Part shown: positions 10,083 to 54,179 of the stretch, piece by piece
Numbering within the stretch: position 1 is the stretch's first letter
Layout of the letters: each line of letters begins with the position of its first letter
Origin: Entomortierella parvispora E1425
Taxonomy: Eukaryota > Fungi > Mortierellomycota
Direction: 5' to 3'
NCBI GenBank assembly: GCA_020891255.1
Contig: BQFW01000008.1
Coordinates: forward strand, 2,790,001 to 2,854,000
DNA: 64,000 bases
The notes under the pieces: model-generated
Seen by the model: only the letters and a program-made list of their open reading frames with translations
Told to the model about the DNA's origin: nothing
Databases searched by the model: none
Made by a program: the position numbers and the translations under genes

Positions 10083-10339
10083 TTGTGTTTATAGTGCAGT
10101 GCAGTGCGTGTGCGATTGACTGCTGAAGAGGTAGAGAAACAAGAAGAGTTTTCCGTGTCTCCGTGTGAGAAACAGCAAAGTGAGTGTTTAATTTGGCAGT
10201 CAAGAGGGTCAAAGCAACCCGGTATCATCACGATTCTCGTGTTCACGTCATTTGAGCAAGGTCCAGTCAACAATATGACTTTATTTGTATTCGGGTACCC
10301 GTTGGATACCTGCGGTGAAGAAGAAAAGGGACGGAGGAG

Positions 10340-11815
10340 TCAATTATCCACGCCTTGCACTACGACGCTATGAAAGGAAGGGGTCATCATACGGAAGCTC
10401 TGTAGATTGGGCCAGGCTTTGATCATCCACTTTGTGTCAATGCCCTCTTCGAGCTGCCATCGATTAAAGTCGCCTTCTTTCCAATAAAGCTGGGAATCGC
10501 TTTCGGCCGTGTCAGAGTTCTTGCGCACGACAGACACTTCTTCAAATTGGAGATGCTTGAGGTATTTTAACGCCAACAGATGACTCGCGGCCCGTTTCCG
10601 CCTCTCGGCTGTCTTGGGCCAGACTAGACTCGCCACTCGGAACGTTTGAAGACCAACACAGGCCCAGTTGTGGACGCTGACGTTGTCGACCTTCATTTGA
10701 AGGCGTTTCATCACAGTCACGACGGCGGCCTCCTTCCCTTCGTGCCTCTCCTCCTCAAAAAGCGCGTCCATATCGAGAAGTGACGTGTGGAGTTCAATGA
10801 GCCGTGGGCAAGCCGCCAGGACGATCTCATACATCCAGTTGAGGAAATTGTGGCTACCGCTTAAATTCAGGGCACGCAGATGATCAAAGTGTCGACTCAG
10901 AGCGTTGATGGACAAATATCCGAAACCCGAACACATTAGATGAACGTCTGTGAGGTCCTGCCACAGGTGGAGTATGCCTGTCAACTCACCCTCATCATCG
11001 CGATGTGACACGTTGCGTATGACCAGTCGGGAGATTTGGATTGTGCGCAGCAACTTTCGGAGCTCGTCAAAGTCCAGAGCAAGAAGATCGTCCTCAGTGG
11101 GCGCAATGGCCAAACCACCTAATCGAGGAATGGACTCTCGCCACTCCTCTGAAGGTGGCGTATGAAAATAATAGAACCAACCCCCATTGGTGAAAGCAAA
11201 CTTGCTCAGACTCTGGTTCTTTTTGAGGACCCTTACCATATCTTCATGCCTGAAGAATGAGAAAATCACACAAAGGACTTCGAGTTGAAGACAATGTTTG
11301 GCTACTTGGTGAAAGAGCTTTGGGGCACCCTTGTGGTTGAGTCGTCGAATAGAAATACTTCGAATCAGTGGATTGCCGATCAGAACCTGCGAGAGCCCCT
11401 CCCAGTCCAAAGAGTTGTACACCACATCTTTTTTACCGCTCGGTGATTCGAGGTGCAAGCACAAGAGGCCATTGATAATTGGCGCCAGTTCACAAAGATA
11501 GGGGCAAGGAACACAGGGATAGAGTTCCCGGACCAGATGACCGTACTTTCGAATCAACGCCATGGGCAGGGGCAATTGATGAGAAGTATCGTTGTCGTTG
11601 TCGCTGTGGTTGTCGTTCGTCGGTAACGTCACAAAAGTATAGCCTTGCTGTGTTGTCTCCTTTGGGTTCTTCTCTTTGGGTCGGAGGTCAATTGATTTGT
11701 ACAATTCTGAGATGAATATCTCATTCCAGCTTTTGCAGACCAGGACGCTGGCAGCCTTGTCCTCCAGACTAAAATACTGAGCGACATGGAGCCAAATCTC
11801 GCTTGGCAAGAACAT
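10340..11815 (-). CDS. F-box / RNI-like LRR protein (paralog A), 491 aa
   Basis: True start taken as ATG 11815 ('MFLPSEIWLHVAQYFSLEDKAASVLVCKSWNEIF'). Clearly homologous end to end with 52225-53697 and 54180-55652. Confidence 0.9.
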   Translation of the reverse strand: MFLPSEIWLHVAQYFSLEDKAASVLVCKSWNEIFISELYKSIDLRPKEKNPKETTQQGYTFVTLPTNDNHSDNDNDTSHQLPLPMALIRKYGHLVRELYPCVPCPYLCELAPIINGLLCLHLESPSGKKDVVYNSLDWEGLSQVLIGNPLIRSISIRRLNHKGAPKLFHQVAKHCLQLEVLCVIFSFFRHEDMVRVLKKNQSLSKFAFTNGGWFYYFHTPPSEEWRESIPRLGGLAIAPTEDDLLALDFDELRKLLRTIQISRLVIRNVSHRDDEGELTGILHLWQDLTDVHLMCSGFGYLSINALSRHFDHLRALNLSGSHNFLNWMYEIVLAACPRLIELHTSLLDMDALFEEERHEGKEAAVVTVMKRLQMKVDNVSVHNWACVGLQTFRVASLVWPKTAERRKRAASHLLALKYLKHLQFEEVSVVRKNSDTAESDSQLYWKEGDFNRWQLEEGIDTKWMIKAWPNLQSFRMMTPSFHSVVVQGVDN

Positions 11816-11959
11816 CGAAAAGGGAGGAAACGGAGTGGGTGGGATGAGGGCGAGGTGGTGAGAGCTTGTATAAAGAAAAAGAGAAAGAGAGAGAAAGAAA
11901 GAAAGAAAAAGAAAAATTAGGATGCACAAAGAGGCGAAAGATGAGGCACAGCCGTAGAT

Positions 11960-25859: not shown

Positions 25860-26487
25860 TGAGGGATGAGACAAGACCAGGGCGCTTTCTAGCTTGATCG
25901 TGGCAATAAAAGCAGTGCTCGTCCTCTCTTTGAATTTCCCTTCTAAGAACACATATCCTCCACTAAATCTTTGGCCATCTGGCATGAAGATACGCGTTCG
26001 TGCGTGCAGCGCAAGCAGTTCGGAGTTTGATACACTTTTCAGTTCAGATTCAGTTTATATCACCAAGGTGGTCGGAAAAAGAGTGCGAGATGCATGGAGT
26101 AATATGTCAAACTAGTCCAAGGGAGCAAACGAAAACACGTCCATGCTTGGGAGACCAGGCCGGTAGGGAAGATTGAGTCACCTTGCCCTCGGAGGAAGGG
26201 CCTCGTCCGTCAACCCCATCTGTACCACCAGGATCGCCCTGAGCAAACATCCAAGCCAGCGGGAAAGAAAAAAAGAGCAAGGATGAGGGTTGTTAGCATC
26301 TTTGTCTTTTTTTCTCACTCTTTCTTTCAATCTTCCCTTCTTTTATACCCTTTCTTTCGCTGTTTTCCACTTTTCTGGATCAACCCTCGCTCCCATTGCC
26401 TACAGATCAGAGTCATTTGTAAAAGTCCTCCTACACATGTCTTCATTGACCTCTTCGTCCTAACAACGTCAGAACGTAAATAGAACC

Positions 26488-26970
26488 ATGCCGCCTTGGT
26501 GCAAACGAACCCTGTCTGCCGAGGACGCCCTCGGCCGTGCAAGCGCTCATCTCGAACATTCCCGCAACACAAAGGACAAAGGACGGGCCATGAAGTTCTC
26601 TGCGATGAGGCAGAAGAGGCGTTGGAGGGAATTGATATCTCAAAGAGCATCATGAATCAGGACCAGGACCAGATCGCAGCTGCTTATCACGAGAATGGCC
26701 GCCTGCTTGAGAAGTTGGGATTTAACGGTGAAGCCCAGCTCAGCTACAACAAAGCCAACGGACTGAGGTACGAATGCTACCGTAAGCAGTCGTTGACATA
26801 TTTGATCGGGTAGTAGGAGACTTGCTTCCGCTAACTTTTTTTTCTCTACTCTCTTGGGCCCTGGTAGGAAGATTACAGATCAGAGCGCCCCAGATCTGTC
26901 GTTGAGTGTTGACAAGGCCCAAACCCCAGCAATAGACACTTCGGTCATATCCTCCTGAACCTTTCCTGTG
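26488..26970 (+). pseudogene. 5' remnant of an NLR paralog (exon 1 and start of exon 2)
   Basis: 'MPPWCKRTLSAEDALGRASAHLEHSR...AAYHENGRLLEKLGFNGEAQLSYNKANGL' parallels exon 1 of 34181-39920 with the same phase-2 donor (AG|GTACG at 26767). A 2-nt TC insertion near 26598 shifts the frame. Confidence 0.8.
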
Positions 26971-27847
26971 ATCTGAACCACAGCCCACGGCAATGAATCT
27001 GTCACTTCAGTCATCTTTACAAAGGATTGTCCACCGCGAGTATTCCAGCTCATTTCGAGGACCAGATGAGCGATCTCGACTTGTTATTGCAATGAGCACT
27101 TTCATGCTCACGGGCAGTAATCGTATTTCTCTGTTTTACTCTTGCATTCAGATAAGAAAGAACAATCGGATTCTTAAACATCCTTCCTATGGCCCATGAC
27201 GATTGCTGGCCGTCTCCTTCCCCTTCTTCTCCTCTGGTGACTATTAAAAATATCATCGGGGAAGCCTCCCGGATGTGCAATTGATTCGAAAACACAAAAA
27301 ATGAAAAAAAAAAAAAAAAAAAAAAAAAAAGACCATCACCAACATCCTGGCCACGCGCAACTCATGGAACCAACAAAGAGGTGGATCTTCAATTGGTGAC
27401 CGTGTGGACACATGAGATAGCTGCACTACTTGATCGCAGCACGTCAAAAGAACACGTGGCTTGGACCTTTTCTGCAGCACGTGGCACAAGAGTCCAGAAA
27501 AAGGAAATCTCGATGTTGAATCAATTGCTGTTTGTTGGCAGCTTTATGATGTTCTTGGCTGTATCGTCGTATAACTGTGGGTATCGTTATATTCTCGCGA
27601 TGGAAACCTTGGTTATTGAAACAAATCCTTAGGTCACGGTGGAGGGGAGCTATGAACAAAGGATTTCGTCGTGGGAGGTTGCTGACTAGCCGCCTTGAAA
27701 AGATGCAAAACGGAAAAATCAGTGAACTCGACACAACGAAGGAGACATCGCGACCTGTATTCATTACAAAAAAACAAACAAAAATGAGCGGAAACCTACA
27801 GTCCACAGCGTGATTCGGCCAATAGACAGTCCCGATAGTGCCCCAAC

Positions 27848-30150
27848 CTATTTGCTGATGTAGGAACATTGAGATTCAAAAGGAGAGGCAGAGAGGAAGA
27901 AGGTCACCATGTTAGCTACAATCTCGCAGTTGCCATGTTTTCGTCCTCATGAACAATATATTTGTTTGCCTTACGAGCTGAAAGAGAAGAACGGAAGCAC
28001 CAGGGAGAAATACAGGTGGCCATGTTAGTTACAATCTTGCAATTGTCATGCTTTCGTCGTTATGAGCAATTAGAAGGCTGGACGTGGACGTACTCGCTGA
28101 TTAAGAAGGACAGAAACATCAGGGAGGAATACAGGTGGCCATGTTAGTTACAATCTTGCAATTGCCATGCCATCGTCCTCACGAACAATAGGTAGATTCG
28201 CCTTACGATCTGAAAGAGAAGAACAGAAACACAAGGGAGGAATACAGGTAGCCATGTTAGTTTCAGTCTCGCAACTGTCGTGTTTTCGTCCTCCCGAACA
28301 ATAGATTTGTTTGCCTTACGGGCTGAAAGAGAAGAACAGAAGCACCAGGGAGGAATACAGGTGGCCATGTTAGTTACAATCTTGCAATTGTCATGCTTTC
28401 GTCGTTATGAGCAATTAGAAGGCTGGACGTGGACGTACCCGCTGATTAAGAAGGACAGAGACATCAGGGAGAAATACAGGTGGCCATGTTAGTTACAATC
28501 TTGCAATTGCCATGCCATCGTCCTCACGAACAATAGGTAGATTCGCCTTACGATCTGAAAGAGAAGAACAGAAACACAAGGGAGGAATACAGGTAGCCAT
28601 GTTAGTTTCAGTCTCGCAACTGTCATGTTTTCGTCCTCCCGAACAATAGATTTGTTTGCCTTACGGGCTGATTGAGCAGAACAGAAACGCCAGGGAGGAA
28701 TACAGGTGGCCATGTTAGTTACAATCTTGCAATTGTCATGCTTTCGTCGTTATGAGCAATTAGAAGGCTGGACGTGGACGTACCCGCTGATTAAGAAGGA
28801 CAGAGACATCAGGGAGAAATACAGGTGGCCATGTTAGTTACAATCTTGCAATTGCCATGCCATCGTCCTCACGAACAATAGGTAGATTCGCCTTACGATC
28901 TGAAAGAGAAGAACAGAAACACAAGGGAGGAATACAGGTGGCTATGTTAGTTTCAGTCTCGCAATTGTCATGTTTTCGCCCTCTCGCGAACAATAGATTT
29001 GTTTGCCTTACGGGCTGATTGAGCAGAACAGCAACACCAGGGAGTAAAGGTGGCGATGTTAGTTATAATCTTTGCGACAGTCATGTCTCCGTCCTCGCGA
29101 ACAATAGATTTGTTTGCCTTACAGGCTGATTGAGCAGAACAGAAACGCCAGGGAGGAATTCAGGTGGCCATGTTAGTTTCAATCTCGCAATTGTCATGTC
29201 TTCGTCGTCATGAGCAATTAGAAGGCTGGACGTACCCGCTGATTAAGAAGGACAGAGACATCAGGGAGAAATACAGGTGGCGATGTTAGTTACCATCTTG
29301 CAATTGTCATGTCTTCGTCCTCACGAACAATAGATTTGTTTGCCATACAGGCTGATTGAGTAGAAGCACCAGGGAGGAATACAGGTGGCCATGTTAGTTA
29401 TAATCTCGCAATTGTCATGTCTTCGTCGTCATGAGCAATTAGAAGGCTGGACGTACTCGCTGATTAAGAAGGACAGAGACATCAGGGAGGAATACAGGTG
29501 GCGATGTTAGTTACAATCTTGCAATTGTCATGTCTTCGTCGTCATGAGCAATTAGAAGGCTCGACGTACCCGGCGCTGATTAAGAAGGACAGAGACATCA
29601 GGGAGAAATACAGGTGGCCTCGTTAGTTTCAGTCTCGCAATTGTCATGTTTTTGCCCTCTCGCGAACAATAGATTTGTTTGCCTTACGGGCTGATTGAGC
29701 AGAACGGCAACACCAGGGAGTAAAGGTGGCGATGTTAGCTATAATCTTTGCGACAGTCATGTCTTCGTCCTCACGAACAATAGATTTGTTTGCCTTACGG
29801 GCTGATTGAGCAGAACAGAAACGCCAGGGAGGAATTCAGGTGGCCATGTTAGTTTCAATCTCGCAATTGTCATGCCATCGTCGTCATGAGCAATTAGAAG
29901 GCTGGACGTACTCGCTGATTAAGAAGGACAGAGACATCAGGGAGAAATACAGGTGGCGATGTTAGTTACCATCTTGCAATTGTCATGTTTTCTTCGGTTC
30001 TAGCGATAGGAGGGGCTGTCTTGAGCGACCGCCGGTGTTCATGAAGAGGTGCCTGTGGTCTTGTGCTCTGTCGTTATATTCGACTTACGCTGGGGCAGCA
30101 ATGGTGAGACCTAGAAAGGCAACAAGGACAAGTAGGAATTGGATCTTCAT
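27848..30150 (-). CDS. Micro-exon gene: 20 exons / 19 introns encoding a predicted 41-aa secreted peptide MKIQFLLVLVAFLGLTIAAPADPPAGDLGLPSGPSGPSDSK
   Basis: Exon 1 is 30150-30089 (signal peptide, donor GTAAGT). Micro-exons: 29914-29912 CGA, 29801-29799 CCC, 29690-29688 CCC, 29575-29570 CGCCGG, 29459-29457 CGA, 29351-29349 CCT, 29238-29236 CGG, 29125-29123 CCT, 29014-29012 CCC, 28899-28897 ATC, 28786-28784 CGG, 28667-28665 CCC, 28554-28552 ATC, 28441-28439 CGG, 28322-28320 CCC, 28209-28207 ATC, 28096-28094 CGA, 27977-27975 CTC. Last exon 27854-27848 (C AAA TAG). Each micro-exon is flanked by CAG and GTACGT/GTAAGG/GTATGG, and every intron has (A/G)CTAAC then an AG-free pyrimidine tract. Confidence 0.8.
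27901..29990. repeat. Tandem array of about 19 monomers (108-119 bp) with a 345-bp three-monomer higher-order repeat; equals the intron + micro-exon units of the gene above
   Basis: Core 'aggtggccatgttagttacaatcttgcaattgtcatg' recurs at 27901, 28014, 28133, 28246, 28359, 28478, 28591, 28704, 28823, 28936, 29048, 29162, 29275, 29383, 29496, 29612, 29724, 29838 and 29951. Confidence 0.97.
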
Positions 30151-30275
30151 TGTAAGGCGGTTGGGACTGGAAGTTGTGTGGAGTAGGCTGAACAAGGTCA
30201 AGATGGAGGGAAAGGTGTGGATCAAGCGATGGTCGTTGCTCAAAGTAAAGGGTGGTACTTAAGAAGACAGATGAG

Positions 30276-30283
30276 TATTAATA
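30276..30283 (-). promoter_or_regulatory. TATA-like element upstream of the micro-exon gene
   Basis: TATTAATA about 130 bp upstream of ATG 30150, followed by a pyrimidine-rich leader and a favourable ACA-ATG context. Confidence 0.4.
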
Positions 30284-30949
30284 AGGTCAAATTCATGTTA
30301 TTCTCGTCCCTTCGATTCGTTGAGGAGATAGAACAAAGAAAATATCTAGGAGCAACGTCCAAGGCATTGTTTTGCAGGGGGCGCCCCTTGCCCTTTCGAT
30401 TTCTTTCTTTTTGGATAGAGGGGACGTCAAGAGGCGTCTGCTACGGGACTCATTCCGACCAAGAAAGAGAGGAGAGAGAGAGAGAGAAAAGTCAGTATGC
30501 ATGAGGCAGGGAACCTTTTGTTTTATTTCGTATTCCTCATCACCATCAGAACAAGACGAACCCGCTGGTAAATTGTAAATGGTGAAGACAAAAAAGAGGC
30601 GGTTTGGTTGGGAATCCAATCCTGCACCGAAGGGAAATGTTTTCAGGTGAAGGTACAAAGATGGCAGACAAGATGGTGTCACTAAAAACTAGTCGTCGAT
30701 GATATGAGGATCCTCCACCTCAACTTCCCGTCTCTGCTCCCGCCTCACCTCATGCTCCGCTGAAATGATTGTCGTCGCTGATTCGGGCCTGTCCAGAGAT
30801 GCCATGAGCCCCGTGGAAGAAGCTAAAGCCGACAACAGCTCGCCTGAGCCTTCTTCTCTCTCGTCCCCATCCGACTCCTCTTGCTCGATTGCTTGGCCCG
30901 AATCCCTGTATTCGATTGTTGCTCACGCACCTGTTCTACAATATGTAGG

Positions 30950-32761
30950 GTCGATCCACACTGCCGCCGAGAAACTTTTAGAGGACTTGGCAACGGGTGG
31001 CGAGAGGAACAAGCAGGGTCTGTATATCGCATGCACTCAATCAGGACCAAGCCAAGGCTCTTGGAAGTCACCACGCCTCCATCCCACGCCTCCATCCCAT
31101 ACATCCATCTTGGTTGGCCAGATTCAAAGCTAACCCTCGGTTGAACCGGCTCTGCGAAAGTATCAGCGTCCTCGAACTCAGGAGCAGGAACAACGTCATG
31201 CCATCTACATCCCACCTGAAGCCAAGGCAACTCGCGAGTCGTTTGATGAAGATCTCTTTGATGAAGACCTCTTTGATCCGACAGCCAAGGTCAATTAGTT
31301 TATTACTAAAGATGGAGAAGGGAAAGTGCTCCTCCTTCTAGACTATTCTGGAGCTGGAAAGTCGACATTCAACCTGGAGCTCGAGAAGAGCCTGTGGAGG
31401 ACCTACAACACTGACAAGAAACGGATCCCTGTCTTTGTGACCTTACCCACCATTGACAAACCAGAGGAGTATTTCATTGTCAAGCGACTACGCAACTATG
31501 ACTTTACACAAGATCAGATCCGTGAACTCAAGTCATATGGTCAATTCGACTTGATCTGCCTTGGAACCAGCTTCGATCGTACACTGATCTGCGCTGGGGT
31601 ATGGACTTGTACGAGCTGTGTTCGAGCCAAACAGTTCAGAAGTGGATTCTGATGCTTCTGTGTAGCATCTGAATGTACTTGAGGCCAACAATCAAGACGA
31701 GCCTTTCGTGGAAACACCGCTATTTCGAAAGAGCTTCATACACGAGTCCCCCGGCCATCAATTTCCTTTCCGAACGCGCTCAACAGAGTATCCGATTCAA
31801 GAATCAGCTCTTTAGGTTTATTTAAAATGTCGAAATCCGACGATCGATTCAGTTTAGCTGCCGCCAACGCCATCATCATTTTGGTCTGAGCCGGTGTAAA
31901 TTTCATTAGCGCGGACCTCAAGGGTATTCGAATCCCTGGTGCCGATTTTAGCCTTGGACAATTCGATCACGCCAAACTACAAGGGGCCGATCTTTGGAGT
32001 ACCAAAGTTCGGAGTGCGTGGCTTCATCGCGCTGACCTGGGCTACTATAGAATGGATGGAGCGGATTTTGGTGAATGACTATTCCTGTATGCAGAAAGTG
32101 AGTGAATTCCTGTGCTTTTTCGCCAGACGGAAAACTCTTTGCCATGCCTGCAACGGTGGCTATATCACTGTGTTTGAATCGGAATAGTGGAAAGTCACTT
32201 ATAAACTAGAGGGACACTCGGGCATGGAGTGTGGCATTCTCACCGAATGGACAGTAGGACTGCCTCCGGAGGCGAAGACGGGACTGTTCGACTATGGGAT
32301 ACACGACCAAGCGCAACTTTTTTTGGTCTTGGGGATCCACAGCTTGTCTGTAAACAGCGTCGCATTCTCACCTAATGGGTTGGGCTGCAAATAGCCTCTG
32401 GCAGTGATGACAAGACGGTACGACTCTGGGACACGCAAACCAGGGTGCCTGGATTGATTTTGAGTGGACATAGCGTGCCAGTCCACAGTGTAGTATACTC
32501 GCCGAATGGACGAATGATTGCCACTGTCAGTAATGACTACACAACATTGGGATGCACACACTGGCATAGCTGGCCACATCCTCAACATTGATCGCCTGAC
32601 TCTGTCTGACTGTGGCAACTGATCGAGGACAATGGCGACTATCGTGAACAACTGTGCTGGAGAACAGGACGCGACACGCTTGTAGTCGCGAATGCGTCCA
32701 TTCAGGACGTTCAGGGTCTAAGCGATACAAACTTGCGGTTACTGAAGCAGCGCGGAGCTTA
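30950..32761 (+). pseudogene. Degenerate NACHT-pentapeptide-WD40 NLR (3' remnant), with stops, frameshifts and large internal deletions
   Basis: 'PSVEPALRKYQ..QEQRHAIYIPPEAKATRE', 'SGAGKSTFNLELEKSLWRTYNTDKKRIPVFVTLPTIDKPE', 'ADLKGIRIPGADFS', WD40 scraps, and ending 'RLVVANASIQDVQGLSDTNLRLLKQRGA*', all collinear with 36061-39920. Confidence 0.9.
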
Positions 32762-34072
32762 GAGACTTCAGACTCCTTTTCAGCCTGTCCAAGCTAGACA
32801 TTGTGCATCTTTTTTGATACTTGTTCAAATGTAAACGTTTATTCTGCCTTTTTTTTTTTTTCTTTTCTTGGAGTCCATGTTTCTGTTTACAAAATAATGG
32901 CCGAGGGCTACAAAGCAGGAGTTTGGCACAACCTCCTCCACGTTGTTGTCCCAAGTATTTTCTAGTGCAACGGTTCAACTTGATGTGGTGATGTAGTGGA
33001 ACGTGCGTGAGGTCATTGTTTTTCTTGTTTGGAGACGAAAAGTCAGAAGGTGAGTGGGTGGTGCATGGTGCCTTGTGCTCTTGTCATGAGCTTTTGACAT
33101 TTGCACCGTCTCATTCATTCATTTAGAAGTTTATGTTGAGACTCAGTTTGAATGAGCCACGGTCATGGAGACAGACGAGGCGATGATGAACCACAGTCTC
33201 CAGATTGTCCGTGCCACTCCAAACGGACACGGGAGAAGACCTTGCGCTGAAGCAAAGTCATTTTTGACTCTTCTTTTGTTCTCCAAGCATCGGATGCCAG
33301 TCATGTCTAGAGAATGCACAAAGTAGATTGGGTGTCAAAGAAAAGGATGAATCATGGCCGAGTGATTGTCTGGATGGAGAAGAGATGGGAATCAAGAAGG
33401 TTGAGAGGGAGAGGGAAGATAGAGAAGAGAGGAGAGGATCCACAATCTACGAAATGAGTGGATCGCGTGAGGTATCTCGCGTCCTCCTCGAGGCAGTCAA
33501 GGGGGGTTTTTTCTGGCGACGACGGTGCGCCCACTTGCTTGACGCCTTGACCGGGTTGAGTGGTCAAAGACAAAACACAGCTGAGAGCCCCACTGGGAGG
33601 GATGGACGGCCTTGGATCGCCTTCCTCGGAGGGAGGGGGATGCGGCTAAACAGGCGGGTTCTCTCTGTTCTGACTGACGAGAGAGAGGGCAAAAGCAAAA
33701 GGAAAAGGAAAGGAAAAAGGTGAGAGCAAGCACGCACAGAAGACAGAAGAGAGGGAAAGAGCAAAGAGGAAGAGAGCGAAAAGCGAACTAGCGGGCTAAA
33801 AAAGAAAAGAATCATCAGCCCACCGGCTTTGCCCACCGCTTCATTTCTCGCTCTTCTCTTTCTTCTTTCTCTCTTCTCTCTCCTCTCTTCTCTCTTCTCT
33901 CTTCTCTATCCCCCTCTTTGTCCCACCGACTCGTTCTCTTTTCTCTGGAGTGAGATCTGCAATTCATACGGCAAGGTACATGCATATACATGCAAGGGGT
34001 GCTCGTCTCTCTGGATGCGTCGTTGCCAGCCGACCCGTTCGTTTTCTTTGATTTCTTTTTTTTTTAATTTTA

Positions 34073-39920: not shown

Positions 39921-40424
39921 ACGATGGAAAAGGGTATCTTTGTCAGTCATGCATGTTCATAGTCATTGTCAGCAGTTGGATAGCAACAGTATATTTCATC
40001 AAACTTGGTCTTTTTCTTTTTTTCTTAAGATTCTCAAGGTCATCTGGAAAAAGAAACAATGACAAACAGCAATGACAGGCTTTTTATATATATAGGCAAG
40101 AAAGGACGACGATATATTATGAGTGAGTGGGATGTGGACAAACAACATAAACGATATTGGTATAGAGGGTGCATAGATAAACCAGCTTTGTTTTTTTTTT
40201 CTTCTCCAAGTTCAACGAAAGTAAGAAAGAAAAAAAAGACCTGCACAAGGTCAGACAGACAGAAAAAGAGACAGAGGGGAAAAAGTTGCACAACAACAGG
40301 AAACAGACCATCCTGGATCAGCCATGTTGCTGGCCATCTCTTTCCTGACTCCCTTCTTCTCCCGACGCCTTCATTCCTTGTGTTGCTACTTTTTCTGTTG
40401 TTTTTTTTTTCTTTTTTATCCTGT

Positions 40425-41620
40425 TCAAATCAACTGCAAGTAGTTGCTGGGGGCGATACCAATGGTACCATCCTGCTTGCGTGCTTGCCACCACTTGCCC
40501 TTGTTATCGACGATATCCAAGATTTCACCCTTCGAGAAGCCCAGTTCGTTCCTGTCCTCAGGGTTGGCCTCATACGAGTACAAAGCCTTGGCCTTGTACG
40601 CGTACTCGGGGGCAGCGCCACCGACCGCAGCGCCGTTGGCACCGCTCATGGGCACCACGGTCGCATTGGCGGCCACAGGGGACTGGTTATCGTAATGAGG
40701 TTGCTGGTACTGCTGAGTAGGCGACACAATCGTGTTGTTGTTGGCGTTGTCGTTATGCGTACGAGGGACGGTGAAGCCGTTGATGGATCGCTTGGCGAGC
40801 GAATCCTCCTCGGCGCCAAAGTACACGACCCAGAAAAGGAGGGCGAGTGCTTGGAAGATCAATCCTGCGCCGGCGGCACTGAACTTGGACGCGCCGTAAC
40901 CAAAGACGGAAGAGGCGTTGATGGCCAAGTCAATCTGGGTGAACAAAAGCGACAAGGATCCTGCAGTGAAGGTGAGGATCTAGTTTTTGAGAGAAGGAAG
41001 AGGAGGAGGAAAGAAGGGAGGGGAAGGGGGGTTAGGTGATCGAGCGGGTTCAAAGGTAGTTCTCCATCGGAACAATTGAGCAATTGAGGATTCTCTTTTT
41101 TTTTTTTTTGCGCTTTGTTTTCCTTACGACAAGACGGTACTGGCGGACAGAATCGGTAGAGACAGCCAAGGCCGTGCCGAGCAACAAGAACAGGTTGTAA
41201 AAGAGGTCAACCCAGATCAGACGGACAGCGCTGCCAATGATGCAGGCGGCGATGAACGTAATAAACCAGCCGATCTAAACGAGATAGAGGGTCCCACATG
41301 AAAAGCAAGATCAGTTCTTTTTGTGCTGTTGTTTTTCTTCCCTTGTTGTCCGTTGCCTGCTGTGTGTGAAGAGTTGTCTTTCTCCAGAGGATGAAGACAG
41401 AGACCTGCAGAAAGAGGGTTGGTATTCTTTCCATCCTGCAAGTTTTTTGTTTCTCTCGTCGGGGTTTTTTTTTTTTTTTTGGTTGTTGTGTTTTTGTTTC
41501 TTTTTTCCGACAAATTTTGGTTCCCAGTGGTTGGAAAACCACACTTACGCCAAAGAGCACCAACGAGCAGACGAAAAATGGCTGTGCAAGCACGAGCGCA
41601 GGATCAATGTGGGCGGCCAT
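40425..41620 (-). CDS. SHO1: Osmosensor SHO1 (transmembrane segments + C-terminal SH3), 3 exons: 41620-41549, 41274-41128, 40979-40425
   Basis: SH3 'YKAKALYSYEANPEDRNELGFSKGEILDIVDNKGKWWQARK.DGTIGIAPSNY'; hydrophobic N-terminal segments; in-frame GT..AG introns. Confidence 0.9.
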
Positions 41621-43595
41621 GGAAAAGAAGAGTTACAGGGGAAGCCTAGATATGGATGGATGGTATTGTTAAGGTAAACAAAAGGAGAAGAGAGAAAGAA
41701 AGAGAGAGAAAGAGAATAAAGACATGGTTAGCAATTGAGGCAGGCATCCTTTGAGTCCCGGGAGAGATCCGCGTCTTAACCCATGTAAGGTTCGAAAATC
41801 AAGGGGCGATTGAACGGATGATGAGAGACGACAAAATTAACAGCAGAGGAGAGAGAGAGAGAGAGTAGAGTCGAGGGTGAGGAGACAGAGAGACAAGAGA
41901 GAAAGAGAGAATGACGAGTGAGGAGAGCTGTCGCGTGAAGGAGTTGCTGTAGTGGGGCAGAGAGATAAATGGAGAGGATAGAGAATGAAAGACAAAGGAG
42001 GAGGAGAGGGTGGGTGCGTTGTGTGTCAGCCGGAACAGGGTTGATGAATGTCGAGGGTCCAAAGAGGAGAAGCAGTACGAAGAGCAAGGTATGATGCACA
42101 TAGGGTGACGGGGTTGGTATGTAGCGTAGGGTATGTTCAGCATGTAGTCATCCACCTGTGATGGATGGAGTGCAGGCAGTAAGAATGGATGCGAGGAACA
42201 AAGCACGCGAGGGTGGAACACGTTGTTGTTGTTGTTTGTCCCTGAATAGTTCAGACGGATGGGCGCAAGTGAAAAGGGACGGTTGGAACTGCAGGGGGTG
42301 TGTTGTGGTTGCGGGTGGTGGTGGTGTTGGGTAACAGCCATGGAAGCAATGCCATTAGAGGGAGAGAGAAAAGAGAGACTTGCCTCGGGAATGGGGATGA
42401 CACGGGAAGGGAAGGGAAGGGGGATGAGGACAAAGAGAAGAGAAGAGAAGAGAGATGGATGCAATTCAACCAGGAAGTTGCAATCAAAAACGGAGGCAAA
42501 GGCAAGGAAGGCGTGCCAGAGAGGCGGGGACGTGGGGCGTGGAAGGGGATTGGGCGAGAATGAGGAGAGAGAGAGAAGAAAGCGAAGGAAAGGAAAGGAG
42601 AGAAGAAGAAGAGAGAGAGAGAGATGAAGAGAGGTTGCACTTGTTGTTGTTGTTGCCCATGCCTCTCTCTCTCTGTCTTCCCTCTCTCTTTCCACCTTCT
42701 TGGCCTTTTCTTCTTGGAAACACGGCTCTCATTCCTCACTGGCGGATGGCATCTGTCCATCCTGTCCATATCCTCGTTAGCCTACTCTCTTGGTGCCTAA
42801 AAAAAAAAGTCCGCCGCCTGACACCCATCTATCTTTGTTCCTGCAGGCAAGCCCAACGGTCCCCGGTCCTCTTTTTTTACACCCAAGACCAGACGGGCTG
42901 CAGGGGACAGAAGCTCCTCTCTCCTCTCTTTCTCCTTCTGCTCCTATGGCCGACCCACTGGCCCCCTACCAGAAACAGGAAGAACCTCCACTGTGGTTCC
43001 TTGCGAGCTCTTTCCCCCCTGTCCTCCTATGTCATAAACACAAAAAACACAAGAACGAGAGGGCCCAAGTCCTTGGTCAGAGTTCAGTGGCGCCTGTGAT
43101 TGTGTGATGTGATGCTCTCAACTGTTGTTTTGTATCCCAACAGCACGGCGGCAATGCGCTTTTAGTGTTTTGGCTGACCGACCGGACAGAAGGCTAGAAA
43201 CGGTTCATTTCAACCGCGATAAATTGGATTGCTCTCATTCCAAGGACAAGGGCCAGGCGTCTTCTGCTGCTGCTGCAACACACATTCCCCAACACACACA
43301 TGCACACACACTTCCCACCTAGAGCTTTCATTTTTGAACAGTTGTTTTTATTGTCATTAGCCCAATGCTACGCTGCAGACATTGGTTGAAGATCATCCCA
43401 AGAATGGTGTGCATGGGTGGGACAGAAAGGTAAACTGCCTTTTTTTTTTTTTTTTTTCTTGGGAGGCTCAATAGGCCCATTTATTTTCTTTTTTTTTTAG
43501 GTGGTCGCAATCGATGTCCTCAACTCCAAAACAAAAAACTTCGACATTTGGGGCTAAAGACAGACTGGACATGCTCACTCCTTCTTGTCTGCAGC

Positions 43596-46202
43596 TCACT
43601 CATTGTGAGACTGCATTAAAAACAAATCGCCCCAAATCCGACGCTTGATCAGGTAGGGCACATACTCCCAGTCTTTGGCGATAGCTCCAAAGCTCCTCTT
43701 GATACTAGCGTCCGATTCCCCTGAATCTTCTTGGCTTAACGTGCGCTCTTTCCATTGCCGGACTTGACGCGCACACAGGTCAAATAGACTCGGGATCCGG
43801 ATGCGATCGTCCTTGAACTCATATCTTAGAACACGTCTTAACGTTGACACGTACAAGTACCGACCATCCGTGCTCCAACCAAGTCCTCGGAGACCATCAA
43901 GGATCCGAAGGCTCTTGTCTTTCTCGCCTCGGAAAGAACACATCAGGATATCGTGCTTTTCTTCATAGTGGGGACCAGTACATCCTCCACCGGTGGGACC
44001 TCGAGAGTTCAACTCAACATCCGGTACCAGATCCTGATCTCCAATGCAGCAGCCCGTGATGTCAACCACATGCACAAATCCGTACCAGTTGTTCACCGCA
44101 AAGACATTTTCCAGCTTTGGGTGAAACTCGATCGCGTAACTGAACCCTCCAGTGTCCACGCAACACACAATCTCTCTGGAAGGCATTGACCAGACCATGA
44201 CCTTGGAAGTCGTATCAGATGTATGCGCAAACTTTGTCGACGATGCATTCCAGGCAACGTACTGGGATGTGTAGTTATTGTTGACAACCCGCCGACGCTT
44301 ATTGTGTGTTCCGAAAATGACTCTGTCGGGGATGGCATGTTCCTGTGGTGGTCCAAACTGATGCAGCAGTCTCGGAGGATCCCTTTTCCTAGCCATCGTG
44401 GGCGTTGCCTGATCTTTACTCCTTAACGAATCCCTTGCGTTATCGCTCAGGCCCAGTTTTTGCTCCACGGCTTCCATAGAATCGTCCGAGTTGTAATATT
44501 CAGAGTCCGTGTCCAAATCCTTCAGCTCTAGCTCTTGCTCTCGCTCCTCTCGGGCAATCCGTTGCTCCTCAGTCTCCGCCACGTGGGTGATGTCCATTGT
44601 AAAGACACGAGCACTGTCTCCGACAATGACGATCCAACGTCCGTTCGGGGACACCTTTGCATCGTTCAGTCGTTCGCCATGGAATCCCTTCTTGATCCAG
44701 GTATGGTCTTCCTTGTACTTGAAAATGTGCTCAAACATATCCACCTCTCCGTGCCATTTGGATGCCTGACGTCTAGCAAGGCAAGGGTGGTCCGGGAGGG
44801 CGGCGATGAAAAGTCCATACTCGTTTCCAGTCATCACCATGTAGTGGTCAAACTGTCCTGACTGGGTAGGGTATCCTTCTTTCAAATCGTACTCGTCTTC
44901 ATCATCGTCACCATCCTCGCTGCCATCCACATCCATGCCATCCTCGTCCTGGTGCATTTTGGATCGGTAGAATCTAGGCCAGCGAACAATCTGGATACTA
45001 TTGAGCATCATATCATCCGGCTGCCCAGGGATAGTGTCGTTATGGATCTCGATAGGCTCGCCTCCACAGTCTGTACAATAGGCAACCAGGTTTCCGTCTG
45101 AAGTTCCATGCGCCAGGTATCCATATCTATGAGCGATACAGAGTGGGTCATCTTCTATCCCAACCTCCACGTAGGCCTCGGACTGAGGTAGTTCATCGAA
45201 TTTGTAGATCGAAATAGGCAAGAACTTTGTCGCTGGAACAGTCATGAGCTCTCTGGCATAGGGTCTGAAAACTTCCTCCATGACCCTCTCGTCGTAACGT
45301 TCATCAAGATCCACACTGGCGTTCATCCGCAAGGTAAAAGTCAAGTCGGTCATCCTGGGCAAGACTCCGCAGCGAAGGATCATGTCCTGATTGATGGTAT
45401 AGAGGTCGTCCCAGAGTCCCATGGCTGAAGGCGATACCGTGAGTGAGTTGGCACATTGTTGGTGAAATGAAATAGCGGGAGAATGTTCCACTTCTTGAGG
45501 ATGACCCGGTCCTCGAACAATAAGAGGAGAAAGTCCCTGTCGCGACTCTGTTGAAAAATTATAGTATGGCTCATGCGTGTCGTCCCTTTTGATGCCCAGT
45601 TTCCGCTCCCGATTCTTGCGACCAGTCTTGAGGTGAAGCATCAGTTGGCGGATCTTGGCCGTCAAATGCCCAATTTCGAATTCGGAGGGGTCAAACTGCT
45701 CCACACGCAAGCGATCAAACATGTCGACCTCGCCTTCGCCGTCGTTCGCAGTGAGTTCCCGTTTGGGCTCGTATTTCTCGTCGCCACTGAACTCTGACAT
45801 GATGTCAATCATATCCGGCCGTCGGTTGGCGCGAAAGGCAGGCGTCAAGGCTTCGATATTGATTGCGTTGTCGTCGTCGTCATCCCATAGTTGACCAGGG
45901 ATCGGGTTCCCCTCCGCATCCTCCCAGGCATCAAAATCTTCATCGTCGTCCGAGAAGAATTCAGCATCCTCATCCATGTCGTTATCGCCATCATCGCCCG
46001 AATCCTCGGTCTCCCATTCTGACGTCTCCTCCTCTGGGACAATGTCGCCTGTCGTGGACTCGACCTCTGTCCCTGAGGCCTCGGTCTCCCAGTCTGAAGC
46101 ATCGCCGTGGGCGTGATCGTCTATTGTGGACTGCTCTGACACGTTGTCGCGGTTGTTGTTGCTATGGCCGCCAGAGTGACTCTGTCCAGAAGAGGACTCC
46201 AT
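43596..46202 (-). CDS. Uncharacterised 868-aa protein: acidic disordered N-terminus, WD40-like propeller, C-terminal BC-box-like motif
   Basis: Single long ORF; 'LNDAKVSPNGRWIVIVGD', 'YVAWNASSTKFAHTSD', 'GLGWSTDGRYLYVS', 'IPSLFDLCARQV'. Confidence 0.7.
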   Translation of the reverse strand: MESSSGQSHSGGHSNNNRDNVSEQSTIDDHAHGDASDWETEASGTEVESTTGDIVPEEETSEWETEDSGDDGDNDMDEDAEFFSDDDEDFDAWEDAEGNPIPGQLWDDDDDNAINIEALTPAFRANRRPDMIDIMSEFSGDEKYEPKRELTANDGEGEVDMFDRLRVEQFDPSEFEIGHLTAKIRQLMLHLKTGRKNRERKLGIKRDDTHEPYYNFSTESRQGLSPLIVRGPGHPQEVEHSPAISFHQQCANSLTVSPSAMGLWDDLYTINQDMILRCGVLPRMTDLTFTLRMNASVDLDERYDERVMEEVFRPYARELMTVPATKFLPISIYKFDELPQSEAYVEVGIEDDPLCIAHRYGYLAHGTSDGNLVAYCTDCGGEPIEIHNDTIPGQPDDMMLNSIQIVRWPRFYRSKMHQDEDGMDVDGSEDGDDDEDEYDLKEGYPTQSGQFDHYMVMTGNEYGLFIAALPDHPCLARRQASKWHGEVDMFEHIFKYKEDHTWIKKGFHGERLNDAKVSPNGRWIVIVGDSARVFTMDITHVAETEEQRIAREEREQELELKDLDTDSEYYNSDDSMEAVEQKLGLSDNARDSLRSKDQATPTMARKRDPPRLLHQFGPPQEHAIPDRVIFGTHNKRRRVVNNNYTSQYVAWNASSTKFAHTSDTTSKVMVWSMPSREIVCCVDTGGFSYAIEFHPKLENVFAVNNWYGFVHVVDITGCCIGDQDLVPDVELNSRGPTGGGCTGPHYEEKHDILMCSFRGEKDKSLRILDGLRGLGWSTDGRYLYVSTLRRVLRYEFKDDRIRIPSLFDLCARQVRQWKERTLSQEDSGESDASIKRSFGAIAKDWEYVPYLIKRRIWGDLFLMQSHNE

Positions 46203-47195
46203 AGCTTTGCTGTGATGGAGGTGTGTGTAGAGTGCGACTTTGTGATTGACTGCGGCGCAGGTGTGGTCCTTTGCAGAAATGAGGGAATGAGTCTACGAGA
46301 GTGAATGCTGAAAGAAAAAGAAAAAACAGTTTCGAATGCGCCTCCACAAGTTTTTCTTTTTTGAGTGATCACGTGATTCGTAGAATCTTGTCCTCCTTCA
46401 CTCTCCATTCCGCCATATCATTCCTCCGGTTCTTATGTTATCAGGATGTGCCTCTTGCACGACTCGTGTTGTGTCATATCGTCAAAGGCAAGATCCTTGC
46501 AATGTTGGGCAAGGGAGTCACTCCTTACACCTTCTCAAGGACTATTACTTGATGCGGCGATACATAGGGCGTTCACGGACACGCACCAATTCAACTTTCT
46601 TTTTCGCGATTCAAGATCAACAGGTCGCAAATCAGAAAAACCGACCTCTAACGTAGATAGTCATATTCCAGCCTAAATCCCAACTCTCAGTAATCAAAAG
46701 AAACCCTGGCTTCATCGACAGAGCTGTTGCGGCAGCGAATCTGTCAAGGCCGTGAACATGGCTCCCTATGTGTTATGGTGGTTGTAGATCTTATCGTAGA
46801 GAATCCAGGACCCTATCATCACCCTATCTGGTGACAGGATCAGCGGGTTCTGGAAAATCGACATTCTTGCCCCATCTATGTCGACTTGTCAAGTTGGTGC
46901 GATTATCCACCTACGGGGTTTCGCAGAGAGGTCTCGATATTCGTCGTATCTTTTGCATAGGAGGAACTGAAAAAATACGTCCACTCTCGATGGAGCAACT
47001 CCATGCGCTCCGCCACACCTCGATGCACCCTCGTTAAAAGACATGTCTCTCCACCCATTCTTCATCTCATCTTCAGACCATATAAAAATGCAATTAAGGG
47101 AGATAACGTTGTGTTTTCTTGAGCGCAAGTGCCCACGTTACACCATCCACTATCAACGTTTGTTCGCCCGACTTGTGCGACCTACAATTGTGTCT

Positions 47196-49160
47196 TTAAT
47201 AAGATCTATCCGAGTGGTGATCATGACCATGACCATTCTGTTCCAGGGACCGCCTGGCGCCTGAGAGAGAAGACGGCGAGACAGGTTGTGATTGAATCGA
47301 GGAGACAGCCGCAGTGGAGGGGATCGACGAACTCCTGGATTTGGGCGAATCTATGATCAGCTCTCCAACTGGGTGCCGTCCACCATTCCGTTCTTGCATT
47401 GAATGAGAGTCCATGCTACGGCGACTCTGATCTAAAGATCTCCGCGACGCCGCTTCCTGGTGCTGCTGTTGAGAGGACGATGAATGGGATAGCGGACGTT
47501 GGCGATGATGACCCACTGAATTCATACGGGCAGCTTCCTTACGCTCCTCCTTCACATTGGCTTCGGTCATGTCTATCCGGTGTTGGATCTCGCGCTCGAC
47601 GACGAGGCTATCTTCCCGGAAACTACCGCCCCAGTCCCAAAGTTGAAATCCCGCTACAAACTGCATCTGTTCCCTGGTCTCGATGGCCTTGGGTGATCTC
47701 TGAGCACGCACCCACTCAACTGTGTCCACATAGTCCTGAAAGTAACGGAGGCGCAGTAGCCAACAACAAGCAACCACAGCTGCTCGGCCCACACCTGGTT
47801 ATCACGCACAGGGCACAAAAGGGGGAAGAGAAAACAGGATGGAAGGAGAGAGGGAAGAAGGGGGAAGAGGTTAGCCAACTATCCAGATCCTGTTCAAGGA
47901 GAAAAACAACAAGAAAAAAGGAGCTCCTGTCGTCATTGGGATCCTAGAGAAAGAGACCAAAGTCGAGATTTTTTTTTTCTGGCGAAAAGATGACGCGTGC
48001 GCCTTCTTGCTCTCTCTCTTTCTCTGTTTTTTTTTCTCCCGCATCGGGACGTCATACTTCATCCCAGTAAAATGGGATCTTACCTCCTCGGCAATGCACT
48101 AGGACATTTTCACCCCGTTTGGTCGTCTCGTCGATCCTGTCCAACACTTTCTCCATCTCTGCGAATGAATAAGGTGTGCTTCCCTCCACCATTGGAATCC
48201 TGGAAAACACAAGAACAAACAGATCGGGATGACGGCGCGTGAGCAAGGAGTGAACATAACATCAACAGCACAAAAAATGCAAAAGAGTGCACCAAGTAGC
48301 TTGGTGCAAATCAGGACTAGTGCCATGCACTGGATCCATGCTCACCTGACAACGTCCAAACCATTGCGAGTGGCCGCCTCCAGGTACTTTGAAAAAGGTG
48401 ATCCGAGGAGCTCTAGTTCCTCATCGAAAAGGCAGCTATTGACACAAGGGCAACATGCCAGGAATGTTTAGTAAGAATCACCTTGACCAAAAAGGGCGTC
48501 TGACACCTCAAAACCAAAAATCGATTAAGATCGCATCTCCGATGGTGGCAACGATGACAGCAATGAAAAAAAAATGAAAAAGATAGGCGCCACTGCGCTG
48601 TACGACTGTACGCCCATCCTCCTCCTGCTCTTGTGGGTCCTCAAGCATTCAAGAACGTGTCCTTACCACACCACACGAGTAAAGCCAAGCTGACGGAGTC
48701 GATCAAAGTCCATGTCCAGATCACGCACAATCTTGGCCCTGCCATTGACGGGTCCATCCAATCGAACCTTTTTCCCAGGGCAGGAGGACAAGCCCAGGTT
48801 GCCCCTTGGCCGCCAGTCGGGGTAAAACATCTTGGCGCGGCCGATCGCTCCGTCGGGACCCTCCTGCTTCAGGGCCGCTGCTTGTTGTTGTGCGAAATCA
48901 AAGAGGGAGGTGAAGGGGGTCAGGCCTGTCTCGTCCCTTTCATGACCCTCGAAATGGATAGGTGAGCCGAATTTGGGGACCTTCATGTCCTTTTGGAGAA
49001 GAGCAGAGACCCAAGGAGGTATGATCCAGCTGACATTGATAGGGTGTGAGATCGAGTCCTTGAAGGAGACAGGTGCGGGTTTGTAGTATGTTGCGGGGAC
49101 TTGACTCTGTAACTCTGACGGTGGCGGCGCCCTGCTGAGTAACCTCTGCAGTTGTGCCAT
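47196..49160 (-). CDS. CDKN3/KAP-like dual-specificity protein phosphatase, 4 exons
   Basis: 'GNLGLSSCPGKKVRL..RDLDMDFDRL'; splicing at 48083/47794 assembles the CX5R loop HCRGGVGRA. Confidence 0.85.
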
Positions 49161-49700
49161 GGTATTTGAATGGAAAGGGAGGAATGAATAAGATTAGGAA
49201 GATGAAAAGTGAAAAGGGAAGGGAAGGGAGATGGTAGGTGAGTGTAAAAGGGAATGCAATGGGAAGAAAGAGAAGAGAGAAGAGAAAACGAAGGGGAGAA
49301 GACCATGCAAAAGAAGGCGTGGCTTGGGGTGGGTCGCTGATCGTGGTGGAAGGATGAGGGCTCTAGTGACATTGTGCGGATGCACAGCATTTACCCTGGA
49401 GAGAAAGGAGTCGGGGGGCGTGACCCTGTAGGGGAGACCTAGGTCAGGCATGCATGCATTGCATGGCATTCAATCATTCGTGTGTGCGGTGCAGAGTGCA
49501 GTGCAGTGCAGTGCAACCAACACCTCCTCCGCACACACACATCCAAAGCGATCTCTGTGGCAGGGTCTTGTTTCGCAGTCACGCTCTTTTTCTTTTTTTC
49601 TTTTTTTTTTTTTTTTTTTTGTCCTTCCCCAAACAGACACGCATCGACGCATGCTCCATTCCTCTCCTCCTTACTTCCTTCTTCATAATCACTGATCACC

Positions 49701-53697: not shown

Positions 53698-54018
53698 ACC
53701 TTTTGTACTTCCTTTCCCCACGGCAGTGCCCCTCGAGTGCGTGAACATACACAAATAGAAGTTGGTTTCCTTTTATTTCTCATCCCAAACTCTAGTACAT
53801 GTGCGCCTTATCGACCTGTATATAAAGACCCGTTTGTTAGAGTTCAGTGGGCTCACTCCGGAGTGCTACACTTCGTTCTTGGGTTGACGCCTTGGTGGTT
53901 CGAGCGGGGATAGTCACATCTTCTTGAGTTATCGCTTCAGTTAACAGCCCATGGGCCTACGGTTATTTCCTTGTTCAAGGGTGCACCGCCATGCTGTGGA
54001 ATCGTCATTCGACATTTT

Positions 54019-54051
54019 TTTGCCACCGCTTTTTCCGTCAACTTTGCCACC
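54019..54051. promoter_or_regulatory. Two TTTGCCACC motifs upstream of F-box C
   Basis: At 54019 and 54043, about 129-161 bp upstream of ATG 54180. Confidence 0.55.
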
Positions 54052-54179
54052 ATCTTTGTTTTTTTTTTGTGCTCTCTTGTTCTTTCTCTTTTCTTTTTTT
54101 TCCCTCCCACAAATCTCTCACCGCGCCATCCGCACTTTGCATCTCCATTCCGCCCATCGCCTCTCCCGATATTCACATA

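Follow-up and report, generated by a model that had tools for sequence, protein, structure and literature searches.

The locus described here lies in a stretch of 64,000 nucleotides (hereafter the window) from genomic DNA of Entomortierella parvispora E1425, a member of the Mortierellomycota (PMC8759367), which corresponds to BQFW01000008.1:2790001-2854000 of assembly GCA_020891255.1. On the minus strand, positions 27848-30150 (2303 bp) hold a tandem array that can be read as a gene, in which an exon resembling a signal peptide is followed by 18 micro-exons of 3 or 6 nt separated by introns, nearly all of them tandemly duplicated. GenBank has no annotated gene between 25860 and 34180, a gap of 8.3 kb of which the array occupies 2.3 kb, against a genome-wide mean of about one gene per 3.3 kb. 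The gap is bordered by a kinase gene ending at 25859 and by EMPS_06551 (NACHT-WD40), which starts at 34181. Although this annotation was made with RNA-seq hints, it leaves the locus without a gene, in line with the earlier suggestion that gene predictors would miss it.

The minus strand of 27500-30500 was read and then parsed by script. The resulting gene model consists of a 62-nt exon 1, 18 micro-exons (17 of 3 nt and one of 6 nt) and a 7-nt coding end, joined by 19 complete introns of 105-174 nt. Its parts and its immediate surroundings are the following.

30151..30290, minus strand: putative promoter and short 5' leader, proposed from the sequence
30284-30276, minus strand: TATA-like TTATTAATA
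~30213-30155, minus strand: CT-rich tract
30089..30150, minus strand: exon 1, 62 nt, encoding MKIQFLLVLVAFLGLTIAAP plus GC (phase 2), with signal-peptide-like n, h and c regions, ending in GC before the donor GTAAGT; parsed, and single in the window
29915..30088, minus strand: intron 1, 174 nt, with a unique 5' part and a repeat-homologous 3' part of 65 nt (AACTAAC, AG-free tract, AATCAG)
27975..29914, minus strand: array of 18 micro-exons and 17 paralogous introns of 105-116 nt, period about 113 nt
29912..29914, minus strand: micro-exon 2, CGA
29799..29801, minus strand: micro-exon 3, CCC
29688..29690, minus strand: micro-exon 4, CCC
29570..29575, minus strand: micro-exon 5, CGCCGG, the sole 6-nt one
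29457..29459, minus strand: micro-exon 6, CGA
29349..29351, minus strand: micro-exon 7, CCT
29236..29238, minus strand: micro-exon 8, CGG
29123..29125, minus strand: micro-exon 9, CCT
29012..29014, minus strand: micro-exon 10, CCC
28897..28899, minus strand: micro-exon 11, ATC
28784..28786, minus strand: micro-exon 12, CGG
28665..28667, minus strand: micro-exon 13, CCC
28552..28554, minus strand: micro-exon 14, ATC
28439..28441, minus strand: micro-exon 15, CGG
28320..28322, minus strand: micro-exon 16, CCC
28207..28209, minus strand: micro-exon 17, ATC
28094..28096, minus strand: micro-exon 18, CGA
27975..27977, minus strand: micro-exon 19, CTC
27855..27974, minus strand: intron 19, 120 nt, with a repeat-type 5' half, AGCTAAC and a unique 52-nt AG-free tract ending in CATCAG
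27848..27854, minus strand: coding part of the final exon, C AAA TAG (end of the Ser codon, then Lys and stop)
27613..27847, minus strand: putative 3' untranslated region (UTR), which holds the 18-nt motif AAGGATTTGTTTCAATAA (27630-27613), common to an expressed paralogue

The joined coding sequence (CDS) of 126 nt contains no internal stop and specifies a product of 41 aa, MKIQFLLVLVAFLGLTIAAPADPPAGDLGLPSGPSGPSDSK, with about 5.5% of the 2303 bp being coding. All micro-exon lengths are multiples of three; together the micro-exons account for 57 nt of the 126-nt CDS and for 57 of its 64 nt beyond exon 1. Translation of exon 1 gives MK, a 15-residue hydrophobic core and TIA|AP, which is signal-peptide-like. 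The start codon has an A at -3, and no other ATG occurs between the TATA-like box and it. Nonsense-mediated decay of the spliced transcript is not expected, because the stop codon sits in the last exon.

This layout had been proposed in the preliminary description, and the scripted parse reproduced it: the 18 junctions of CAG, three nt (once six) and a donor are exact and at the coordinates given there, exon 1 ends in GC before GTAAGT at 30150-30089, the last acceptor leads into C AAA TAG at 27854-27848, and the 126-nt CDS over 2303 bp yields the same peptide without an internal stop. The same description had called the tract before each acceptor free of AG. This is true once the first 6 nt behind the branch motif are set aside; in two introns, 4 and 10, an AG follows the motif at a distance of 2-6 nt, too near for use.

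Every intron of the gene model has a full set of splicing signals. Donors in all 19 introns are GTAAGT, GTACGT, GTAAGG or GTATGG; the branch-point motif is (A/G)CTAAC, its branch A lying 42-57 nt upstream of the acceptor, and each intron ends in TCAG. The features of U2-type introns were found in 19/19 introns: a GT donor with a +5 G, a CTRAY branch point placed 15-70 nt ahead of the acceptor, an AG-free tract and YAG. Acceptor and donor are spaced by 3 nt (once 6) and never by 0. The pattern CAG-(N3, once N6)-GTA[ACT]G[GT] occurs exactly 18 times in the array and nowhere else on the minus strand of the window, and a generic scan of the 64 kb for branch point-YAG-N1-9-GTRNGN returned the 18 array junctions and two isolated plus-strand matches that resemble them loosely. 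The pattern is genuine and lies far beyond chance. The array introns are moreover of native size and type, because the introns of the neighbouring EMPS_06551 measure 121 and 93 nt and one of them has a GTACGT donor.

At the same time the array has the tandem and higher-order structure of a satellite. Tandem Repeats Finder reported a period of 113 in 18.5 copies together with a 345-bp higher-order period, which comprises three units and adds Pro-Ser-Gly. The 17 repeat introns are 65-100% identical to one another and fall into about six classes. All share the 3' 65 nt, and they carry one of two very different 5' halves, GTACGTCCAGCC... and GTAAGGCAAACA... (also given as GTACGTCCAGCCTTCTAATTGCT... 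and GTAAGGCAAACAAATCTATTGTT...), with a good donor in both.

The 17 repeat introns were aligned, a maximum-likelihood tree of the units was built and substitutions were counted by parsimony. At least 88 changes fell in the 99 non-signal columns, 52 of which are variable, and none in the 11 signal columns (G1, T2, A3, G5, CTAAC and AG; Fisher p = 5e-4). All possible single substitutions in the 17 introns were also enumerated, a substitution being counted as damaging when it destroyed a signal or created an AG in the exclusion zone. The damaging share was 12.5%, or 8.1% under a lenient definition that considers YTRAY, GT and AG only. The probability that 88 random changes all miss is 8e-6, rising to 6e-4 under the lenient definition and to 0.02 if only half of the events are independent. 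The 702 nt lying more than 6 nt past the branch motifs contain not one AG, where 9.7 +/- 2.7 would be expected (0/2000 shuffles were as low), and the upstream parts of the introns contain 60 AG in 1095 nt. Variation within the unit is highest in the three micro-exon columns, in which 9-11 changes are counted; this makes 3-3.7 for each column, compared with 0.89 (Poisson p = 2e-3 to 1e-4). Exon length changed by +3 only, while intron indels were -5, -3, +1, +2, +6 and +10. These data suggest that the splice signals of the repeat units look protected, bearing the statistical signature of purifying selection. The pattern is as would be expected if every unit must be spliced and the 3-nt inserts carry varying information.

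The constraint data bear directly on the main rival explanation, a silent and recently expanded copy, which is a possible though less probable account of the locus. It holds that one intron-plus-codon unit of a secreted-peptide gene was amplified by replication slippage or unequal crossing-over, leaving a pseudogene that carries a satellite; the units would look like perfect introns merely by descent, with the copy unexpressed or its product unselected. Some units are 98-100% identical, so that part of the expansion is recent, and no homologue was found outside the genome. The absence of an annotated gene despite the RNA-seq hints, mentioned above, fits such a copy as well. However, other units are down to 65% identical, and their at least 88 substitutions include 0 damaging ones where neutral decay would have produced about 7-11. 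Also at odds with a silent by-product is the contrast between the hypervariable exon triplets and the AG and GT next to them, which never vary.

Selection on an RNA product, in the form of small RNAs or stable lariats from the tandem introns (a SNORD116-type host) or of a sponge or timer for splicing factors, was considered as well and is very improbable. Its appeal is that so little of the locus is coding, that snoRNA host genes are the other known setting of tandemly repeated introns, and that, when unit classes are compared, conservation is better in the 3' 65 nt than in the first ~25 nt behind the donor. This conserved 3' part is, however, the branch point, polypyrimidine tract and acceptor, and the density of parsimony changes is equal in both halves of the unit (0.89 per column). 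No Rfam match was found in 27848-30150 at E <= 1, and the folding of six representative introns was no better than that of shuffles (z -1.65 to +1.37). An in-frame signal-peptide exon and a stop codon would be an unexplained coincidence if RNA were the product. Intron-borne RNA (snoRNA, mirtron or host gene) was accordingly left without support, Rfam and folding both being negative.

Public sequencing runs were used to examine the locus at the level of reads. A run search on the gene-rich stretch 40000-49900 of the window returned 11 runs, and contigs of four of them (X1-X4) were aligned to 26500-31500. X1 contains all words of 40000-49900 and is probably DNA of the source strain. X2, drawn from that same sample, amounts to 24 Mb of contigs and contains 64% of the words in that stretch, where annotated genes span about 58%; we infer that X2 is the RNA-seq of the strain, a run whose kind was guessed only as 'DNA?'. 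X3 represents a strain diverged by about 5% and has only array pieces of 54-60 nt, and X4 is unrelated. The flanks of the array are mostly missing from X3, and this poor representation is a point in favour of a silent, recently expanded copy.

In X1, the flanks of the array are single copy with a depth of about 75-80, and short-read contigs match 27345-28023, 28220-28324, 28825-28939, 29033-29153 and 29959-31383 with 0 differences. The unit sequences are not a Nanopore artefact, because X1 contigs match several units and anchor both flanks, the copy number being unverified. Hence the idea that the long-read assembly invented or mis-stacked units is hardly credible, even though the array is fragmented in short-read contigs and a handful of X1 contigs link units that lie far apart, the sides measuring only 20-22 nt. 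The assembly was in addition polished with Illumina reads, which leaves only the copy number unverified. An earlier conclusion that X1 depth implies many genomic copies was withdrawn, as the summed depths of cross-mapping contigs suffice to explain it.

The X1 contigs that join distant units run over 28073-28654 (skipping 580 nt) and 28759-29112 (skipping 352 nt), the shorter side being 20-22 nt. They may reflect cross-mapping or heterogeneity of array copy number among nuclei.

The preliminary description had proposed checks at the RNA level. Among the contigs of X2, the sole run behaving like the strain's RNA-seq, no transcript of the array locus was found. Sequence of the intron units was present in 0 X2 contigs, compared with 133 X1 DNA contigs there, which counts against an RNA product and in favour of a splicing-competent gene. 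The lack of any X2 contig on the locus itself agrees with a silent copy. It follows that the array locus has no detectable expression in 7-day mycelium on CMMY, with the limit that contigs show presence rather than absence.

X2 did contain one related contig, of 318 nt and depth 30. It starts with a TruSeq adapter, and its orientation fits an RF-stranded library and a sense minus-strand transcript. The contig aligns to exon 1 at 30149-30092 with 7 mismatches (51/58 identical, 88%); since the strain is identical and exon 1 nevertheless differs at seven positions, the contig derives from a paralogue. After exon 1 it continues with 166 unaligned nt and then an 18-nt match at 27630-27613, in the putative 3' UTR, with homology running a few nt into the 53-nt loose end past this motif. 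Its end lies 1 nt away from the corresponding ATG, in keeping with a very short leader. A member of the family is thus transcribed from the predicted strand as a short mRNA in which exon 1 and 3' UTR lie close together.

A further explanation is that the locus is transcribed, with the array behaving mainly as one composite intron and the micro-exons being incidental. Exon 1 would then be joined to the last exon, or to a varying few micro-exons, giving a signal peptide plus Ala-Lys or a few residues. All skipping patterns are in frame, and the paralogue has 166 nt from exon 1 to the motif, a shorter distance than full splicing would give here, namely 281 nt (or 284 nt if counting begins at the same point of exon 1). 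U1 and U2AF cannot both sit on a 3-nt exon, given their spliceosome footprints, and a 3-nt exon that is unable to hold them together favours skipping. Yet intron definition and co-transcriptional splicing use the nearest downstream branch point and acceptor first. Block skipping would maintain no internal signals, whereas 17/17 sets of donor, branch point and acceptor are intact. Apart from the motif the two paralogues have different 3' UTRs, which makes the 166-nt spacing irrelevant to the array locus. Taken with these points, a composite intron is improbable.

Searches for further relatives were made in several directions. Neither the unit core nor exon 1 has a further copy in the 64-kb window, and the unit core is also absent from the other loci of the genome that were fetched. 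At the GCA_015852425.1 locus of a 68%-identical relative (P0125) of the 1235-aa gene, which lies on the same contig beyond the window, partial synteny was found and no array. This arrayless, partly syntenic locus says little on the age of the family.

Comparison with known systems places the array closest to micro-exon genes (MEGs). The micro-exons of MEGs measure about 6-36 nt, not 3 nt, and their splicing and secretion have been demonstrated experimentally, while the array locus is known from DNA alone. Their introns have not, to our knowledge, been reported as near-identical tandem paralogues. Unlike MEGs, the array gene is fungal, has no sequence relationship to them and has smaller exons, and its introns are tandem paralogues. 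The MEGs of Schistosoma and other flatworms (DeMarco et al. 2010, cited in PMC4350168) have a conventional first exon with a signal peptide, which exon 1 of the array gene resembles, and share with the array tiny exons of 3n length that make up much of the CDS and a short last exon; skipping in them is always in frame, as it would be here, and can yield a range of kindred secreted peptides. They seem to be confined to platyhelminths (PMC4350168), and functional microexons in filamentous fungi were not described before 2024 (PMC11121469). The preliminary description had called the locus MEG-like; the analogy of architecture stands, and membership of the family does not, there being no homology and no platyhelminth origin. 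It had also mentioned knowing no described fungal example, with which the literature agrees: full-text searches found no fungal precedent, no chains of single-codon exons and no such tandemly duplicated introns. The array gene would be an extreme form of micro-exon gene.

Recursive splicing, known from Drosophila ratchet points and vertebrate recursive-splicing (RS) exons (PMC8605326, PMC6224609, PMC6110457), is similar in that a donor follows (almost) directly after an acceptor, each splice regenerates a 5' splice site and removal proceeds stepwise 5' to 3'. Ratchet points leave 0 nt and remove one long intron, whereas the array, in which each segment is by itself a complete short intron, would leave one codon per step and so build a CDS. 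With a spacing of 3 nt (once 6) and never 0, the junctions are not ratchet points.

Intron gain by tandem duplication (the Rogers model; potato RdRp, PMC4974935; Drosophila, PMC2891723) also rests on local duplication instead of insertion, with copies that are splicing-competent from birth. In the known cases a single duplication of an exonic AGGT segment gives one intron, whereas here a whole intron plus 3 nt has been amplified to 18 copies, with a higher-order repeat and with the protein lengthened too. Fungal introner-like elements (ILEs) similarly form families of near-identical spliceosomal introns within one genome (PMC4457414, PMC3609843). They are dispersed over many genes, are longer than regular introns and have a predicted stable fold, whereas the array units are tandem only (within the window) and fold in an ordinary way. 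The array was accordingly not assigned to the ILEs, the unit core being confined to it in the window and the folding scores lying within the range given above. The SNORD115/116 arrays (PMC3413130, PMC12429941) resemble it in having a tandem exon-plus-intron unit whose exons carry little information. Their intron cargo is box C/D snoRNA and their exons are non-coding, whereas no RNA family or structure was found in the introns of the array and its exons assemble a signal-peptide open reading frame (ORF).

The remainder of the gap holds only short ORFs without a Pfam match, and the ORFs flanking the array at 27444-27869, 30293-30682, 30765-31133 and 26327-26653 likewise returned none. Some 520 nt downstream of the stop codon, 27296-27330 is a run of A35 on the plus strand (T35 on the gene strand). 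Short-read contigs are interrupted at this run, which could be a poly(A) tail left by retroposition or a terminator region free of nucleosomes. The 53 nt of 31345-31397 are a point at which contigs of X1, X3 and the large, otherwise unrelated X4 all begin or are joined, and the segment is probably conserved or repeated. Another tandem structure of the gap, a short one, lies at 32228-32511, where a 25-nt motif (AGTGTGGCATTCTCACCGAATGGAC-like) occurs in three copies spaced 128-131 nt apart. Inverted-repeat arms, GA-rich and CT-rich, are found at 33404-33436 and 33885-33917, about 450 nt apart. Weak Rfam matches resembling miRNA precursors occur on both strands at 33708-33918, far under the gathering scores, and are probably due to low-complexity pairing.

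Further out, EMPS_06551 (P0001, 34181-39920) is an NLR-like gene with NACHT, ARM and WD40 domains. Its best matches (44-48% identity) include proteins filed under Mycoavidus cysteinexigens, Mycoavidus sp. HKI and Glomeribacter, which may point to gene transfer between host and symbiont or to contaminated endosymbiont assemblies. F-box paralogues lie within the window at 8559-11929 and 53991-55652. On the same contig, at about 3,079,855-3,084,035 of BQFW01000008.1, there is a tandem trio of F-box-type paralogues of 353, 399 and 401 aa, consisting of EMPS_06622, EMPS_06623 and the 401-aa gene, presumably EMPS_06624.

The explanation that best accommodates these data, and which we hold with middling confidence, is that the locus is a splicing-competent micro-exon gene and one copy of a small family specific to E. 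parvispora. In its favour stand the gene-like anatomy, the constraint on splice signals, the native size and type of the introns and the transcribed paralogue. Several points weigh against it. The likeness of exon 1 to a signal peptide was judged by eye only. The 41-aa peptide has no homologue among 5.8 billion proteins, none of which shares three 5-residue words with it, and a unit-core scan of JGI metagenomes gave no related array, its one match being a chance one in a bacterial gene. A search for RNA runs over the locus listed none, and X2 depth is zero across 26500-31500, spliced or unspliced, except for the paralogue contig. That paralogue may carry no array and may have no bearing on whether micro-exons are included. 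As the units are related by descent, the statistics of conservation depend on events inferred from one tree, and repeat turnover or gene conversion could distort the counts, which are estimates. Finally, we know of no fungus in which splicing of chains of 3-nt exons has been shown.

For a splicing-competent gene we infer the following course, building on the DNA anatomy and the splice-signal constraint described above. A minus-strand transcript would start just upstream of the ATG at 30150, downstream of the TATA-like box and the CT-rich tract, with a very short leader. The spliceosome would act by intron definition on introns of about 110 nt, co-transcriptionally. Intron 1 would be excised first and the 18 following introns stepwise 5' to 3', each ligation leaving 3 nt (once 6) and setting the next GTAxGx donor right behind the growing exon. 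Such a scheme would resemble recursive splicing with a 3-nt increment, and U1 and U2AF would never share a 3-nt exon, because the donor is re-created behind the growing exon at every step. The product would be a signal peptide and a Pro/Gly/Ser/Asp-rich tail of about 21-23 aa that is secreted, with APADPPAGDLGLPSGPSGPSDSK and length variants among the predicted secreted forms. Since the internal exons are all multiples of 3, any skipping would give an in-frame, shorter peptide ending in Lys-stop. Growth of the array itself may have proceeded by unequal crossing-over of intron-plus-codon units, latest as 345-bp blocks that each added Pro-Ser-Gly. Transcription of the array locus, stepwise inclusion of its 18 micro-exons and secretion of the product are all predicted steps of this scheme.

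A bolder form of the proposal, which is on balance doubtful, is that this E. parvispora gene family writes secreted peptides codon by codon, with an intron at each residue boundary and with introns that are tandem paralogues. The length and sequence of the peptide could then evolve through unequal crossing-over of intron-plus-codon units, and skipping of subsets of the single-codon exons might produce a combinatorial peptide library from one locus.

For annotation, the locus indicates that repeat maskers and gene predictors can hide real genes for secreted peptides, as the empty 8.3-kb gap in GenBank may illustrate here. If the micro-exons are spliced in, about one intron per codon, 5.5% coding sequence and 18 consecutive tiny exons would set new extremes of gene structure. 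Should the codon-by-codon reading be true, no other known eukaryotic gene would equal this one in intron density or in the length of its chain of minimal exons. With the micro-exons spliced in, the locus would also offer a natural test bed for an intron-defining spliceosome working on exons smaller than its footprint and for the order of intron removal, as well as a clear case in which intron gain and protein elongation came about through one tandem duplication. The architecture of MEGs, so far found only in flatworms, would in that case be extended to fungi.

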